Positions 2,503 through 35,460 of a stretch of 64,000 nt of DNA are shown piece after piece. Below the pieces are notes generated by a model. That model did no database searches, had not been told where the DNA came from, and was given only the letters and a program-made list of their open reading frames with translations. Position numbers and translations under genes: made by a program. Position 1 is the first letter of the stretch. Each line of letters starts with the position of its first letter. The stretch covers positions 1-64,000 of the forward strand of contig CBFFRP010000068.1 of NCBI GenBank assembly GCA_965644295.1, written 5' to 3'. The DNA is from Paraphysomonas bandaiensis (Eukaryota; Protista; Chrysophyceae).

Positions 2503-3400
2503 ATGAAGAAAACAACGAACGACAAGCCAACAAGATATGCAAGATTTGGCAAGAAACCGAGCACCGATAAACCAGAACATGTCCCGATATTAAGATACGG
2601 TGCCTACTCGAACCTTGCCACATTCAAACAGAGGCTTGTAGTGGTGGGCATGCAAAAGTACGGTAACTTTGCACGCCTAGTAGAGCTGGACAAAGATTAT
2701 GAGCCCGATGCGATAAACCAAGAGAAATTTGACTTGGACAATGACCCCTATGGAGTCAACCTCGACTTGATGAAGGACAAGATCAAGACCAGAGGGAGAT
2801 TGATAGACAAGATGTTGTATGCAGATCGGCATTGTACTCGTCCATGATAGACCATCTGAGCCAAGAATCAATGAACGCAGTCAAGCTGTTAGATGAGTAC
2901 GAGATTATGAACAGGACCAAGGATCCACTATTGCGATGGTTAGCTATCAAACGAACGCACAAGGTGTCTACTAACTCCAGCGTAAGTACAGTGGTACGCG
3001 CGGAAGCAAGGAGAAAGTACCAGGAGGCCAAACAAGGCGCATATGAGAGCATAGATACTTACAAGGAGCGATTTGACCACCTATTGGAGGCATACAAAGA
3101 CATGAATAATGCAGAAATGAATGAAGAAGATATTGCGATGAACTTCTTCGAAGGGTTAGATGACACAAGACTAGCTATCTCAATGATCTAACAATGGGAA
3201 CACAGGAAGCATCTAAGCATGTCAACGAAATATATACAAAGGTATCAAAATATCTGACGCCAATGAGAGCGCTGAGAACGAGCGGCGGAGCTGCATTCGT
3301 GAACAAATCGAGCACCGGCAAAGACAAGAAATCAGCAGATAGTGATGCTATACCAGAGCAACAATAGAGGAATGACACGAAATCACACAGCAGCAAACGT
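2503..3400 (+). pseudogene. Frameshifted LTR-retrotransposon gag relic
   Basis: ORFs 2503-2847 and 2832-3191 overlap in different frames; motifs DPLLRWLAIKRTH, KQGAYESIDTYKERF, AMNFFEGLD resemble copia-type gag; no pol follows. Confidence 0.7.
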
Positions 3401-3596
3401 GCTCAGAAATCCTGGAAGCAGCAGCATGTGAGGCAGGAAATTATGCTTCACTCCTACACAACGTATCGGCTTCCTGTGTATATTTTTGTTCACATATGCC
3501 TCTAATATTGAGACAACAATTATGTGTATTCCAGCCGTATTTGTATGTAATTAATATAGAGTAGTTTTACTTCAAGTAATTACCGAAAAATAAGAT

Positions 3597-29294: not shown

Positions 29295-29345
29295 TTATTT
29301 ACTTTATGTTGTATGTGTTGTGCTGAGTCATTGTAGTTTTGTAGT

Positions 29346-29565
29346 GGGTGACTACCTAAATTGCACAAACACATAAATGCATAAAAAATAGGCTGCATAA
29401 ACTCATGAATTTATGCAGATTTATGATTTTTTAGGAGACCCCTCCGGACCCCTCGTACAAACTATCCTATATGCATAAACATATGCAGAAACTGGGTCTG
29501 AATAGATTTTTATAATCCCAGACTTTTTATGCATTTATGTATTTATGCAATTTAGGTAGTCACCC
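29346..29565. mobile_element. 220-bp MITE, PIF/Harbinger-related (ANT-type 3-bp TSD)
   Basis: 42-bp TIRs GGGTGACTACCTAAATTGCA... with 2 mismatches; AGT on both sides (29343-29345, 29566-29568). Confidence 0.88.
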
Positions 29566-29802
29566 AGTGTATCGAGATAATATGCTTCTGGTGGGCACAG
29601 TCAGTGTATGAGAAGATGAGCACCCGGAGTATATACTACACACTACGACTACAATGTATATTGTTGTATCAGTTGGGGTGCATTTCTAGAGTTGAGACTG
29701 TATTCTTGTATTCTTGTATGCATACACGTCTGTAGTCTCAAATCTAGAAAAATAGGGACCCACACGCTCCATCTTCTCCGCAACACTCAGCAAGAAGGAC
29801 AT

Positions 29803-32800
29803 CCAGTCGCCGTCAAAAGTCCGAACAAGTCAAAAGTCCGAACAACCGTTTTTTGATCAAAAGTCCAAAAATGTCGTTCGAAACTCTCATATTTCTCTCA
29901 CTTCAGTGACATTGAAATCCAATTAACACAACACTTGAACTGACCTGACACTGGAGACTTATCATTCTATGGCAATCATGGACCACTGGACACGAATATG
30001 CAACCAGATTTTCATTTCATACACTGCTTCTCTCAATATCACAAGGTTTCTTATATCGTTCCAATTCATCGAGTACCCCTCACATCCGGCACCATTTCTC
30101 AAAATCCCTACATTGAATTTTCAACATGACGATCTTAAAAGGTTTGTATACAGATGGACTCTCACATATATGAGTGCTGTGCAATTCCTACGACTTGTTT
30201 TTGAATAATGTCTGATTTGTGTTCTTTCAGTGACTCGTCTATGCGACTACAAGAATCTTCGCAAAAAGAACCGACAAGACGCCATAGACAAGCTCCGGGC
30301 AGCTAAATTTGCAAAAGCACAGTCGAAAGACAGCTATGGATCAGATGTTGACCTCAATAATGACTTTAGTTGGTCAAGGTTGCGCAGTTAAGCAGTGTGA
30401 ACCAGTACTGCTGAGAGCAAAATATTTCTCGAAGAGTGCTCCTCAGGTAGCTGTTTTTGTCTATCTATGCGTTTATACATATTTATGAGGAACAATCTAT
30501 CTTATAGGACGTAGACAAATGGTAATTGTAGCTATTCGGGTCTAGAATTGGAAGAATGAAGCGCGTGTGTTCGTTCCGGCTGGCCAGGCGTATGAGGAAG
30601 CTGTTACTGTGATCTTGTCCACTTCTGTGCCCTACGGGGATTACATAGAGACACGAAGGAGTGTAAAGAGTGTCAACATTCAAGGGAGCAAGTTTCTTAA
30701 GCAGTTCATGATAACCTCTTGGATAATATCACTCTACCTAAAGACCAAATTAGACAATGCAAACAAGAACTAGATAGTACTATCTACATATTCGTTGCTG
30801 AATTCTTATTAACAACTGGAGTGGTAATCCGATTAATTCGTAAGTTTTATTTCTTCATGCTCCACTCTCTTGAATTTGTAGACATAGCTAGCTAGGTTGT
30901 GGTATCATGATAGGTGATAACAGACAGTGGCTACATAAAATCGTTTGATTGTACTACCAGCTATGCGACACATATCATGCAGCAGCACAAAATTAACTTT
31001 ATTATAGTAATATACAATAACGATTGCTAATATATTTAGTGACGATAGCTATTAGTGTACCACTACAAGAAGAAAATAATCATAAATCAGCGGTATTAAA
31101 ACAACGTAAATAAGCGTATTAAAACAACATAATTAAGCTAACTATACTTTGTATCTGTGGCACACTTCACGGAACAGGGCCCAACAAGATCTTACGTCTG
31201 CGAGGGGCAAGTGTGGCACAGCTATCTTACAATTGTCTTTACTTTAGTTCTATCTTCTTGGCAGCCTCTGCTTTCTTCCTCTCCCTTTCAACAGCATTTT
31301 CTGTCTTTTCTCGTTCTCTCTTCTCGGCAGCCTCTTCTTTTTTACGCTTTCTCGCCTTGATAGCTTCCGCCTTTTTGTGCTCAGCCTCTGCCTTTTTGTG
31401 CTCAGCCTCGGCCTTCTTGCGCTCCTTCTCAGCAGCTTTCTCAGCTTTGGCTCGGGTAGAAGCACGTAGCATATCATTGCGTCTTTCGACCTCAACGCTA
31501 TGATTGAGCCATACAGCTCTCTGGCGGATAATACTAAGCTCGTTCAAATTCAACATAGGTGTAGCTAACTTAACGTCATGCTTAGTAAGGATTGCGGAGA
31601 TGTCATCATCACGTGTTAGACCGCGAAGGCTGGCAAGCTGTATGAGTTCTGGTATAACATTATTAAGAAGGCGGGACGCTTCTTCTTCAGGAAGTTGGCA
31701 GATATGAGGGTTTTTCCGAAGCAGGACTTCAGCATCAAACGGCTCGAAAGCGGCCGAGGCGAAGCCAGATATAATGTTGTCACCAGTGTAACACTTGGTG
31801 ATCATTGTAGGCAAGCGATGAAAGAAATTTCTATACGTTGTTATCGAGTCGCTATCCATCTTGATGTCCTTCATATACTGGACAACGTATGGAAGGAAGA
31901 TGGGAGTTGCGCCCTTCGTCTTGGGGTCGTAAAATTCCGCCTTCTTACAATACTCATTGCACAAAGCAAAACATCGCGTGAGATCACAAGGCTGTGCACA
32001 CATGGTGTATGCGGCTGCTAACTTGACAAACTCGATGGAGAAAGAACCCCATTTTTCCATTAGTACGTCGATAAGAGCACGTATGAGTCCATATTCGCCA
32101 TCAAGTGACCAAAGAATAGGGACCTGCTTCTCTATACTCGAGTAATTCACATCGAGTTTCTTCAATGTTCTCTCTTTTCGGTCTCTGTTTTTAACAACTA
32201 CAGGGAGAATGTGTTCATCAATAATAAACATTCCGAAAGTTGCCTCTGCACTGAGTGGTTTCTTTTGTGTAGCATGTGCCTCTTCCAGCTTATCACATTC
32301 ACGGTCGTCATGCTGCTCCCGAAGGGCTCGCATTTGATCCCGTGTGTCCAAGTCAGGACCGGAGCAATAATCATCCCCATTTCCGCTTGGGTTTAGTCCT
32401 TTATCATCGTTACTTTTACATTTTGAACCTTTATCATCTTGAGCAATTTCTTCCTTCTCATCACTACCCTCAACTTCCTTCAAACCCGGCATAGCTTCAT
32501 CACTCTCCTCCATATCAACGTCCTCCCAGACTGTTTCAGCGTCATCTGTAGTTTTGCTCTCAGTGCACTGTTTGATCCTGTGTGCAGGACGAAAAATAAT
32601 GCTCTGTACCCATCCATTCATGTTGAACTTGAAACACTTCAACTCCTTGCATTTTCGTTCCCGGATGACAACAATATGGCTGAGTAGAGCAGGCTCTGCA
32701 CTCATAGTAGCCGTGCACTTAACGGATCGTATCTTCTTCTTGTTGGTAATGGCGACAGAAAGACGGTTAAGTTTCATCAGTTTTTTCATATTCTATGTCA

Positions 32801-34033
32801 AAATTTTGTAAATAAAGTAACCACGAATCGCCAACTATACATACCTGTGGACAACGTGCCCGCCTCTGCTTACTATATCCTAGCATGATGTTGTGAGTAT
32901 CCGAATTGGTCTTGTTCCACGGATGAAATCGGTTGCCTTGAGGATTTTCTGGTGATACCCCTAAGATGGCACCTACTATGGCTACGCTGGATAAGGGATT
33001 GAATGCATCATTGATGGCCTCCTGCCTTCGCGCATTGACTGTGGACGGAGCATCCACACTTTCAGGTGACACCTTTTTCAAATACCTGCCTATGGTGGAA
33101 TTTGAGGGTGCCTTACGATTCTTAAGGAAGTTCCCCCCTTGCTTGTTGACAGTCCCTGCACTGGTCAGTGCTTTAACAAAATCCCCATCGGATGCAGAAG
33201 TGAATGAGTTCCCAGTTGCAGTGGCCTCATGGCTCATGTCGGACAACATTGCCACACCGTCTTCGTCCGTCCAGGTCGGGCGCCCAAGATAGCTACGATT
33301 GGGATCTAGCCCTCTTTCTCGTTTATCTTTGGCCCTACAAAGCAGATATTCCATCAGAAATACGTATGTTATGACAATAAAGAGTTACCTGAAGAACACT
33401 CCACGAGTGATGTTGTGATTGCGACAAAACTCACTAACATTACTAGGTTTATCCTTTTCATATTCATCGAGAATAGCATTGAGGTCAACATCAGATCCAT
33501 AGCTGTCTTTCGACTGTGCTTTTGCAAATTTAGCTGCCCGGAGCTTGTCTATGGCGTCTTGTCGGTTCTTTTTGCGAAGATTCTTGTAGTCGCATAGACG
33601 AGTCACTGAAAGAACACAAATCAGACATTATTCAAAAACAAGTCGTAGGAATTGCACAGCACTCATATATGTGAGAGTCCATCTGTATACAAACCTTTTA
33701 AGATCGTCATGTTGAAAATTCAATGTAGGGATTTTGAGAAATGGTGCCGGATGTGAGGGGTACTCGATGAATTGGAACGATATAAGAAACCTTGTGATAT
33801 TGAGAGAAGCAGTGTATGAAATGAAAATCTGGTTGCATATTCGTGTCCAGTGGTCCATGATTGCCATAGAATGATAAGTCTCCAGTGTCAGGTCAGTTCA
33901 AGTGTTGTGTTAATTGGATTTCAATGTCACTGAAGTGAGAGAAATATGAGAGTTTCGAACGACATTTTTGGACTTTTGATCAAAAAACGGTTGTTCGGAC
34001 TTTTGACTTGTTCGGACTTTTGACGGCGACTGG
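29803..34033 (-). mobile_element. Apparently autonomous DNA transposon, pogo-like, with 556-bp TIRs
   Basis: TIRs 29803-30358 and 33478-34033 (one mismatch seen, at 30343); flanked by ACAT (29799-29802, 34034-34037); three CAAAAGTCC(GAACAA) repeats near each end; internal transposase gene. Confidence 0.95.
31239..33710 (-). CDS. Divergent pogo/DDE_1-like transposase, DD38D (exons 33710-33695, 33605-33389, 33334-32845, 32792-31239)
   Basis: Phase-compatible GT-AG introns; HTH-like NVSEFCRNHNITRGVFFR followed by GRP; NSD (first D), SVKCTATMSAEPALLSHIVVI, WSLDG (second D), KLAAAYTMCAQPCD (third D), NIISGFASAAFEPFD, charged coiled-coil tail. Confidence 0.8.
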
Positions 34034-35460
34034 ACATGCATATCTAGCTGTGGATATCACCGACAGCCTCGTATCGCTCGTATCGCTCGTATCTATCTAA
34101 CATTGTGAACATGAGTAACATGATGAACATATCATAATACTATGAAATCAACTGCAGTGTGTATGAGAAAAGTTGATAACAGGGAAAATTGGCCTCTGAG
34201 TTTATGTAATGCTTGACAGTATTAGCTAAAGGACTAAACCTATTGAACAATGAGCAGAAACCACGTTGGCGAATCAGTCTATTTCCTACAGAAAATGGAA
34301 GAGTAATTGAAAGTGTTCAGATGAAGGAGTTGAACTACGCGTTATTGTTGATTTATTGGGTCAGGAAAATTACGACAATTTTCAGCAAAAGTAAAAGCCT
34401 CTAAGAAATACATTGTCCTATCTGATATCTGGAAGGTTTACCTAGTAGGTCTATGTCTATGTCTATGTTCATTTATTCTAGCGTTCTAGACAACCTTGGA
34501 TCGACTGCCGATGGGTTGCTACTTCTGCTTTATGGGTTAGTCACAATTACTCTATCACATAAGTGTGGCATCGATAATAACTCCATGAAGTTAAATTGAA
34601 TTCTGATTAATTCTAAACATTGTACTAGTTCTACCGACCTACACATATAGGTGAGTATAGGGTCACACTACAAATGTGAAACTCATGAACCGTGCACATG
34701 ATCAATGCATCAATAGATGTAGAAGCTGAATTAAACATCAAGGGACATAGAAATAATTACAATGATACTGGTTCAACTGTCATGAAGTATGTCTGAACTA
34801 TAATTATATATGTGTGTCATTCTGTCAACACTATGCGTTTTGGAAATGGTTCATACTAGGGACTATGACTGTAAATTGTAAATGGCCTTACGGTGTTCAC
34901 TTGGCTATAGCAATAATGAGTGAATCTGATAATATGATGTAATGTTAAGTTTAGAGCAAGCTGCTCTAATGAGCTACTCAGAGAGTTAGTTCATAACATA
35001 CTGTATAGTTAATATAATACTGCTGCGTTTAATTTCTTTGTGAATAAACAATAAACTTTGTTGGCAGTTGTTGGCAACTAGGCATTTTTCGGTGGAAAAC
35101 TTATGAGTGTATCTGAACCAGATACAAAGTAAAGATACAATTGTAGGCGGGAGGTGATTACACAGGATGGTTACGGGAATGGCATGCGGTTTGCAGAATA
35201 TAAGACTTATCCTTAACACACTTTGCTCGATATACTCTCCAACAGAATGTACTATACCAACTCAATAGTTTGACGGCGAGTTTCGAGATGCGCACGGTTA
35301 CATATATATAGTGATTTCTACACTCATTAAGAGACAGCAAGCAGAGAGTACCAGGAAGAAAATAAATCTTATTATGTATGCAAGAGGTTTACCAAATCTC
35401 CAAGCCGCACAGTATTCAACCTGCTCATTACTACACTATATACTCATACTTCAAAGTTTC

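Follow-up and report, generated by a model that had tools for sequence, protein, structure and literature searches.

A probably active transposon of Paraphysomonas bandaiensis with long terminal inverted repeats, a divergent pogo-like DD38D transposase and a target-site duplication that reads as 4 bp

The pogo superfamily of DNA transposons (Tigger, pogoR, Passer, Lemi, Mover, together with Fot/Fot-like) duplicates TA at its target, and some Fot/Fot-like elements duplicate TAA or TAAA (Gao et al. 2020, PMC7386202). Its terminal inverted repeats (TIRs) fall into classes of up to 392-856 bp and the spacing of its catalytic triad is DD29-59D (PMC7386202); the TIRs of Tigger elements reach up to 741 bp (PMC9219625). 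Stramenopiles host some of the pogo families, namely Mover, Passer and Lemi, and Mover, a DD36D family of stramenopiles and red algae, has a DNA-binding domain that is invisible to Pfam (PMC7386202). Here we describe a transposon in the chrysophyte Paraphysomonas bandaiensis, located in the first 64,000 nucleotides (nt) of contig CBFFRP010000068.1 of assembly GCA_965644295.1 (this whole stretch is called the window). It is likely to be an autonomous, probably still active cut-and-paste element, which encodes a transposase of 758 amino acids (aa) with three catalytic aspartates (DDD, spaced as DD38D). The enzyme probably represents a strongly divergent lineage within the IS630/Tc1/mariner/pogo group, and in fold and sequence features its nearest counterparts are pogo (Pfam family DDE_1) transposases. 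An earlier examination of the DNA, made from its letters alone and called the sequence-only reading below, had taken TA duplication, short TIRs and DD29-36D spacing as the established baseline of pogo elements. This baseline is overstated and out of date when compared with the published ranges (PMC7386202): the long TIRs, the 38-residue spacer and the non-TA duplication of the element are each within or near the published variation. Three features are without description in the literature examined: the 4-bp ATAT/AYRT target, a transposase this far from DDE_1, and TIRs that embed a promoter and exons and give rise to a spliced transcript at the left end. The word undescribed is used here with respect to Pfam and this literature.

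The ends of the element are inverted repeats of 556 bp, whose arms were detected at 29802/3-30358 and 33478-34033/4. A comparison of the arms shows one mismatch in 556 nt, at TIR position 541, where window position 30343 is A versus the complement of 33493. In the frame of the right arm the codons are TCT and TCA, which encode Ser both ways, and the mismatch is synonymous. The junctions read ACAT/CCAG at the left and CTGG/ACAT at the right. The long TIRs with a single synonymous mismatch and the ACAT on both sides, all pointed out in the sequence-only reading, are thus found as it had described them. A near-perfect 556-bp inverted repeat that recurs with identical ends at six or more further loci goes far beyond what chance would give. 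Both ends are built on the same plan, with CCAG followed by two tandem 17-bp units, a third AAAAGTCC core within 65 bp, and then CCGTTTTTT. Six of the seven occurrences of AAAAGTCC in the window fall within the two element ends. The subterminal repeats are likely to be binding sites of the transposase. Several binding-site-like repeats per end recall the inverted repeat/direct repeat (IR/DR) layout of Sleeping Beauty. The plan is also observed on L076, a contig from another sample that encodes a distant homologue of 1096 aa: it has CCAG at its start and end, two tandem repeats and CCGTTTTTT, with a different repeat sequence. Long terminal inverted repeats are likewise present in the homologue contigs L072 and L089, both of which begin and end in them. 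In L072, a metagenome homologue with 34-39% identity, the long inverted repeat (L072:1-382 and 3252-3571) reaches the start-codon region of the transposase, and an open reading frame (ORF) of 63 aa is mirrored at both ends.

The transposase gene lies on the minus strand and consists of four exons. When joined, they give 2277 nt and 758 aa with a single terminal stop, and the frame stays open across the joints; lengths, junction contexts and motif positions of the joined frame were checked by script, while the homology searches used the exons individually. All three introns are confirmed as joints in RNA contigs of two data sets, the polyA marine metatranscriptome X16 and run X9. The joint of 33606-33694 is found in X9 only, and those of 33335-33388 and 32793-32844 are found in both X16 and X9. 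No intron-skipping joints were found in the DNA runs X13 and X15. The intact spliced ORF proposed earlier is therefore backed by transcripts. With the promoter and the 5' exons inside the TIRs, each end fires inward. At the left end, RNA contigs of the plus strand span 30304-30833 and a further intron of 61 nt is removed, so this end is transcribed inward and spliced. The sole coding capacity of the left-end RNA is an ORF of 58 aa, of which 48 are identical to the N-terminus of the transposase and 10 are unique residues. No RNA contig covers 30866-31039, and an overlap of the two convergent RNAs is accordingly not seen. A regulatory role for the left-end RNA is speculation. From the sequences compared, the lineage seems to have 5' gene parts embedded in its TIRs as a general trait. 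Between the stop codon of the transposase and the left-end transcript, in non-coding sequence, there are two tandem 23-bp units (31093-31138) with 91% identity.

The catalytic residues are located at D223, D472 and D511 (first, second and third Asp, or D1, D2 and D3). The alignment of exon 3 with the family profile places D223 on the nearly invariant first Asp of the family. D472 and D511 are separated by 38 residues. This agrees with the motifs NxD, LDG and QPCD and with the spacing proposed in the sequence-only reading, as does the acidic insert of about 100 aa that it had placed in the catalytic domain: an Asp/Glu-rich stretch is found between D1 and D2, where the best 100-aa window has 33% Asp and Glu and one 140-aa stretch has 36 such residues. 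The corresponding stretch is of low confidence in the model of homologue P0027 described below. In the family alignments, the order of elements is an N-terminal helical region with GR(P), NxDxxS, a beta hairpin, a variable acidic linker, LDG(D/E)xxQIEA, QPNDL, a helical C-terminal region and a Lys/Glu-rich coiled coil. Many homologues end in a Cys-rich, zinc-finger-like C-terminus, which the window protein does not have. Its Lys/Glu-rich C-terminal tail corresponds to an imperfect direct repeat in the DNA (31247-31447), with four copies of about 36 nt at 61-100% identity. For the putative DNA-binding region, the GRP motif is present, helices are predicted at residues 3-112 of the P0027 model, and alignments in the ESM Atlas to DDE_1 clusters bearing a helix-turn-helix (HTH) begin at residue 1. 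Pfam HTH models (CENP-B_N, HTH_psq, HTH_Tnp_Tc5 and BrkDBD type) gave no match on the window ORFs or on the homologues.

An exhaustive HMMER search with the exon-4 ORF identified 193 proteins at E<=1e-3, and a word-indexed profile search identified six proteins, unnamed or annotated as "hypothetical protein". All relatives that were looked up stem from environmental assemblies, most of them marine; their contigs measure 0.6-5 kb, and none bears an informative name. Several runs of cultured organisms contain the element sequence itself, as do metagenomes and metatranscriptomes of seawater and marine origin. For both window exons, an alignment to the family profile was obtained. Pfam gave no match on the window ORFs, and a Pfam transposase domain at threshold was found in none of ten long homologues and then in none of the 31 alignment members. 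The Tc1/mariner models DDE_3 and Transposase_1 matched neither the window ORFs nor the homologues, and the family profile gave nothing meaningful against the sequences of the PDB. A weak trace of DDE_1 (PF03184) is nevertheless detectable. One of the 31 homologues, P0142, reaches 13.7 bits against a gathering cut-off of 22, a sub-threshold match (E 0.048) over residues 273-323, which is the D2-D3 segment and corresponds to profile positions 76-122.

The fold was predicted with AlphaFold for P0027, an uninterrupted homologue, from the 31-sequence alignment (predicted local distance difference test, pLDDT, 79). In a structural search of PDB representatives with this model, the best matches are Mos1 (Z 13.0 and 12.9), the transposase domain of SETMAR (12.0) and Sleeping Beauty (11.2), and the next ones, retroviral integrases and Tn5, have Z <=7.6. 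The alignments with Mos1, SETMAR and Sleeping Beauty extend over 196-267 residues and cover the whole catalytic domain at 8-10% identity. Foldseek against the PDB returned weak Mos1 rows only (E 0.06). Of the ten fold clusters that lie nearest to the model in the ESM Atlas, nine are of DDE_1/Tigger/CENP-B type, with alignments from residue 1. Language-model features gave top matches of 0.90-0.91 with 178-184 shared features, all of them DDE_1 and including a Tc5-type cluster. The cluster members are environmental throughout and unnamed or uninformatively named, and one related Atlas cluster carries the label Bacillariophyta. The structure prediction suggested by the sequence-only reading for the spliced protein thus yielded a fold of Mos1/SETMAR/Sleeping Beauty type, obtained for the homologue P0027. 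Its assignment as pogo-like is upheld by the fold matches, the language-model features and the weak DDE_1 match over D2-D3. Taken with the modelled structure, these data support a family that is pogo-like in fold, motif order and spacing, yet beyond the reach of the pogo sequence model. Canonical DDE_1 loci are found in the same genome, at C62:6714-7253, C558:1086-1502, C217:391000-391533 and seven more places, some with open frames of 385-499 aa, so the divergent family coexists with ordinary pogo elements.

Copies of the element were surveyed in the whole assembly (62.5 Mb, 669 contigs), in which the window copy is C68. Three copies of 4231 bp are present, C263 and C438 being 100% and 99.98% identical to the window copy. 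One internal-deletion derivative of about 3.2 kb occurs in three copies (C395, C211 and C146) with 99.6-99.7% identity. An older subfamily, with TIRs about 90% identical and an interior of 78-80%, is found at C232, C79, C258, C78, C348 and C412, and a decayed copy (89%) is located on C363. The copies have flanks unrelated to one another, and the window copy's flanks occur nowhere else in the genome; no second haplotig was found for the flanks of the C68, C438 and C263 copies. The deletion derivative is catalytically dead and lies at three sites, each with its own duplication. It was thus mobilised in trans, which points to recent activity. Near-identical copies, the spread of the derivative and the spliced transcripts indicate that the element is young, expressed and probably active. 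The youth and possible activity suggested in the sequence-only reading are borne out by the same observations and by the perfect duplication that each of the near-identical copies carries at its own site. The ratio of nonsynonymous to synonymous substitution rates (dN/dS) between the subfamilies is 0.2-0.3 over the first 411 nt of exon 4 and is not relied on, the older copies being frameshifted deletion derivatives. In C395 (L033) and C258 (L038), the 17-bp subterminal repeat is present once at one end and twice at the other, with arms otherwise identical, so the number of putative binding sites per end is variable and asymmetric.

The flanks of these copies define the target-site duplication (TSD). 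C263, C395, C211, C79 and C232 have ATAT on both sides, the window copy has ACAT, C146 has ATGT and C258 has ATAG, again on both sides; C438 has ATAT at the left and ATA at the right, where the contig ends. A perfect 4-bp duplication is therefore found in all eight complete copies (five times ATAT and once each ACAT, ATGT and ATAG), in line with the altered, non-TA target proposed in the sequence-only reading. ACAT and ATGT are reverse complements and thus represent one target type in two orientations. Two parses of the window copy had been offered, a 4-bp ACAT duplication with CC...GG ends and a 2-bp CA duplication with TCC...GGA ends. The evidence favours the former. In C258, a G lies to the left of CCAG and a G is also the fourth base of the right flank, and a terminal mutation is very unlikely because its arms are identical at 649/649 positions. 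In addition, several unpaired ends depart from the rule of a T left of CCAG and an A right of CTGG: the base is G in C78 and C435 and C in C348 and C662. CCAG itself is retained or reads CTAG. With a small share of doubt left for TA, the duplication reads as 4 bp with CCAG...CTGG ends.

This small share belongs to a canonical TA-duplicating Tc1/mariner/pogo element with ends TCCAG...CTGGA, inserted in the A-TA-T context that Sleeping Beauty prefers, for which the window copy (CA) and C146 (TG) would be off-target insertions. It would fit the six youngest copies, all of which have T left of CCAG and A right of CTGG, and five of the eight pairs do read A-TA-T; the fold, too, is that of TA-duplicating transposases. 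But the ATAG pair of C258 with its identical arms and the G and C ends of the four unpaired copies break this rule, and non-TA insertions would have to account for two of six young copies, a share that far exceeds anything known for the group. We therefore regard a TA-duplicating element as unlikely. The sequence-only reading had itself named plain TA at other copies as evidence against its proposal: most copies do carry ATAT with TA in the centre, but C258 and the unpaired ends speak against a plain TA reading. There is even less room for the suggestion that the copies are assembly duplicates or an immobile relic, with flanks that match only through insertion into pre-existing AT repeats. Several insertions do lie in AT-rich or repeat-rich flanks, and a polymorphic empty site was not found. 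The mutually unrelated flanks of the copies, the unique flanks of the window copy, the non-ATAT duplications (ACAT, ATGT and ATAG) that match at both sides, the spread of the deletion derivative to three sites and the intact ORF with spliced transcripts all contradict it, and we give it hardly any credence.

A Sola identity, in particular with Sola1, was at first favoured for the 4-bp ATAT duplication and the missing Pfam match. The hallmark of Sola1 is a 4-bp AWWT/AWDT duplication, according to Bao et al. 2009 as quoted in PMC3845634, and the pattern of the element (ATAT five times, ATGT once, and ACAT as its complement) is the same; the ATAG of C258 departs from it at position 4. Sola2 also uses ATAT, along with AAAT and ATTT (PMC3627910), and Sola proteins are DDD proteins for which a fungal survey found no Pfam similarity (PMC5751038). 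The catalytic cores, compared by eye with sequences from published supplements, tell otherwise. Sola1-1_AP (PMC3985635) has FDLEK, YSDNCGGQNRN and ERGHT around D1, D2 and D3, whereas the family of the element has NxDxxS, LDGxxxQIEA and QPNDL; none of the three motifs of the Sola1 core, FDLE ... YSDxCxGQN(R/K)N ... GH(T/S), taken from Sola1-1_AP and an aphid homologue, is found in the family alignments. Sola2-1_HM and DFa-2 (PMC3627910, PMC3985635) have DF(A/K)EN, (T/S)DG(C/A)xxx and HGK, the published core strings of Sola2-1_HM being GDFAEN, TDGCAGQYKN and TSHG, and Sola3-1_HM (PMC3985635, PMC3627910) has KDYCQ and SDNASSYHGN at D1 and D2. Against the Sola2 and Sola3 cores, only D-G-x-x-x-Q at the second Asp is common, and it is shared with Sola2-1_HM. 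Furthermore, the three Sola families cluster together and apart from PF03184, PF13358 and PF01359 in the published trees of the study supplying the Sola cores, the neighbours of our family in fold and features are DDE_1 and Mos1/Sleeping Beauty rather than unnamed clusters or domains of unknown function, and the TIR of an insect Sola1, GGACCGTTT..., is unlike the ends of the element. The Sola identity was dropped on the core sequences of Sola1-3 and on the fold and feature searches, and we now hold it to be very improbable.

Several points weigh against a recently mobile, pogo-like element with a 4-bp duplication and have to be set beside the evidence above. The placement near pogo draws on a predicted structure, on embeddings and on the order of motifs rather than on a phylogeny, and the modelled P0027 is only about 22% identical to the window protein. 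Neither the window protein nor its relatives reach the gathering score of Pfam DDE_1, and a six-frame DDE_1 search of the genome returned ten canonical pogo loci, none of them of this element's family. The activity is read from copies, derivatives and transcripts seen in sequence and not from observed transposition; neither an empty site nor an excision footprint turned up, and no joint across the element was seen in four runs. An empty site, moreover, looks the same under the 4-bp and the 2-bp parse. The choice between these parses rests mainly on one paired copy and the unpaired ends, and the six youngest copies fit both alike. In other organisms, the duplication length was not confirmed among ten homologue contigs, most of which end inside repeats, and the old complete copy on L076 has unmatched flanks, AGTA versus AAAT.

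The element's anatomy, its set of copies, the duplications at its targets, the splicing and the similarity in fold are shown by the data; the mechanism of the pogo-like transposon is inferred to be as follows. The N-terminal HTH region would bind the repeated units that carry AAAAGTCC, which lie no more than about 65 bp from each CCAG end, and the two element ends would be paired. The RNase-H-like core would then excise the element and join it, by cuts with a 4-bp stagger, into a site of the form A-T/C-A/G-T (mostly ATAT), and gap repair would produce the 4-bp duplication. The right end would give the transposase mRNA, and the left end a short spliced RNA coding only for the 58-aa N-terminal peptide. 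A further-reaching proposal would make the family a separate, so far undescribed branch at superfamily level within the IS630/Tc1/mariner/pogo group, restricted to marine protists, in which the stagger shifted from 2 to 4 bp, the long TIRs double as promoters, and the non-coding end yields an N-terminal peptide or RNA that tunes transposition. We consider this proposal possible and rather doubtful.

The coordinates of all features are collected in Table 1.

Table 1. Features of the transposon and its flanks, in window positions (D1-D3, catalytic aspartates; X9 and X16, RNA data sets)
Feature	Position	Strand	Remarks
Transposon, 4231 bp	29803-34033		ACAT at each flank
Left TSD copy, 4 bp, ACAT	29799..29802	.	
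Left TIR, 556 bp, CCAG start	29803..30358	+	Mirror image of promoter region and of exon 1, intron 1 and exon 2 (its first 128 nt)
Subterminal repeats, putative transposase-binding sites	29812..29866	+	Tandem 17-bp units 29812-29828 and 29829-29845; third AAAAGTCC core 29859-29866
Left-end inward unit, 58-aa ORF	30126..30391	+	Mirrored intron 30142-30230; stop 30389-30391
Plus-strand intron, 61 nt, GT..AG	30447..30507	+	Downstream of 58-aa ORF; joint in X16 and X9
Segment absent from deletion derivative	31085..32127 (element positions 1283-2325)	.	D472, D511 and C-terminus lost
Transposase gene, 758 aa	31239..33710	-	Exons 33695-33710, 33389-33605, 32845-33334, 31239-32792
Transposase introns	33606-33694 (89 nt), 33335-33388 (54 nt), 32793-32844 (52 nt)	-	All GT..AG
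D511 codon, D3, motif QPCD	31983..31985	-	Invariant in both family alignments (17 and 31 sequences)
D472 codon, D2, motif LDGE	32100..32102	-	Invariant in 17-sequence alignment, nearly invariant in 31-sequence alignment
Acidic, probably disordered insert between D1 and D2	32208..32627	-	
D223 codon, D1, motif NSD	32899..32901	-	Exon 3 aligned to family profile, probability 98.1% (hhalign)
Right TIR, 556 bp	33478..34033	-	Transposase promoter region, exon 1, intron 1 and start (128 nt) of exon 2
Right TSD copy, 4 bp, ACAT	34034..34037	.	

Other repeats are observed near the copies. Just left of the transposon lies a 222-bp unit (29345-29566) with 43-bp inverted repeats that are 95% complementary. 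Several contigs of X9, X13 and X15 break or diverge at the edges of this unit (29345-29358 and 29566-29571), as expected for a dispersed repeat resembling a miniature inverted-repeat transposable element (MITE), and the RNA depth of X9 over 29300-29647 is very high. The left flank of the C263 copy (L002:1100-1496, equal to C263:3894-4290) contains high-copy repeats with a unit of 127-131 bp, present in at least 40 near-identical copies and often paired 2-6 kb apart. Their paired arrangement is suggestive of long terminal repeats (LTRs) or long TIRs of another element.

An enzyme with the Tc1/mariner/pogo fold that duplicates four bases at the palindrome-like ATAT would offer a contrast to the 2-bp TA enzymes with regard to the bending and spacing of target DNA within the active site. 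The family is invisible to Pfam-based annotation; genomes and metatranscriptomes of marine protists probably list it as "hypothetical protein" or "unknown repeat". As an intact, expressed and recently mobile element, it is also a candidate from which a tool for insertional mutagenesis or gene delivery could be developed in marine microalgae, for which few such tools exist. The surprise is limited, since variation in the length of the duplication and of the TIRs and in DDD spacing has already been described for the pogo superfamily.

A comparison of the element with the pogo superfamily shows a common DDD triad, with a D2-D3 spacer of 38 residues here and of 29-59 in published families (PMC7386202), a common order of NxD ... 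(L)D(N/G) ... QPxD, and a predicted N-terminal helical region with GRP. In contrast to that superfamily, the family of the element is undetected by the Pfam DDE_1 or HTH models, its duplication is ATAT/AYRT, a palindrome-like 4-mer, instead of TA, TAA or TAAA, D1 and D2 are about 250 residues apart with an acidic insert in between, promoter and first exons are part of the TIR, and the relatives are known from environmental, mostly marine, assemblies only. Mos1, SETMAR and Sleeping Beauty provide the best structural matches, and their ends likewise start with (C)CAG. The third catalytic residue of the element, however, lies in QPxD and not in the Tc1/mariner motifs, its duplication is 4 bp and not TA, and its protein has about double the size. 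In Caenorhabditis elegans, Tc4 and Tc5 have pogo-related, Pfam-detectable transposases and TIRs of about 0.5-0.8 kb. They differ from the element in their 3-bp TNA duplication, as compared with its 4-bp ATAT, and in their animal host.

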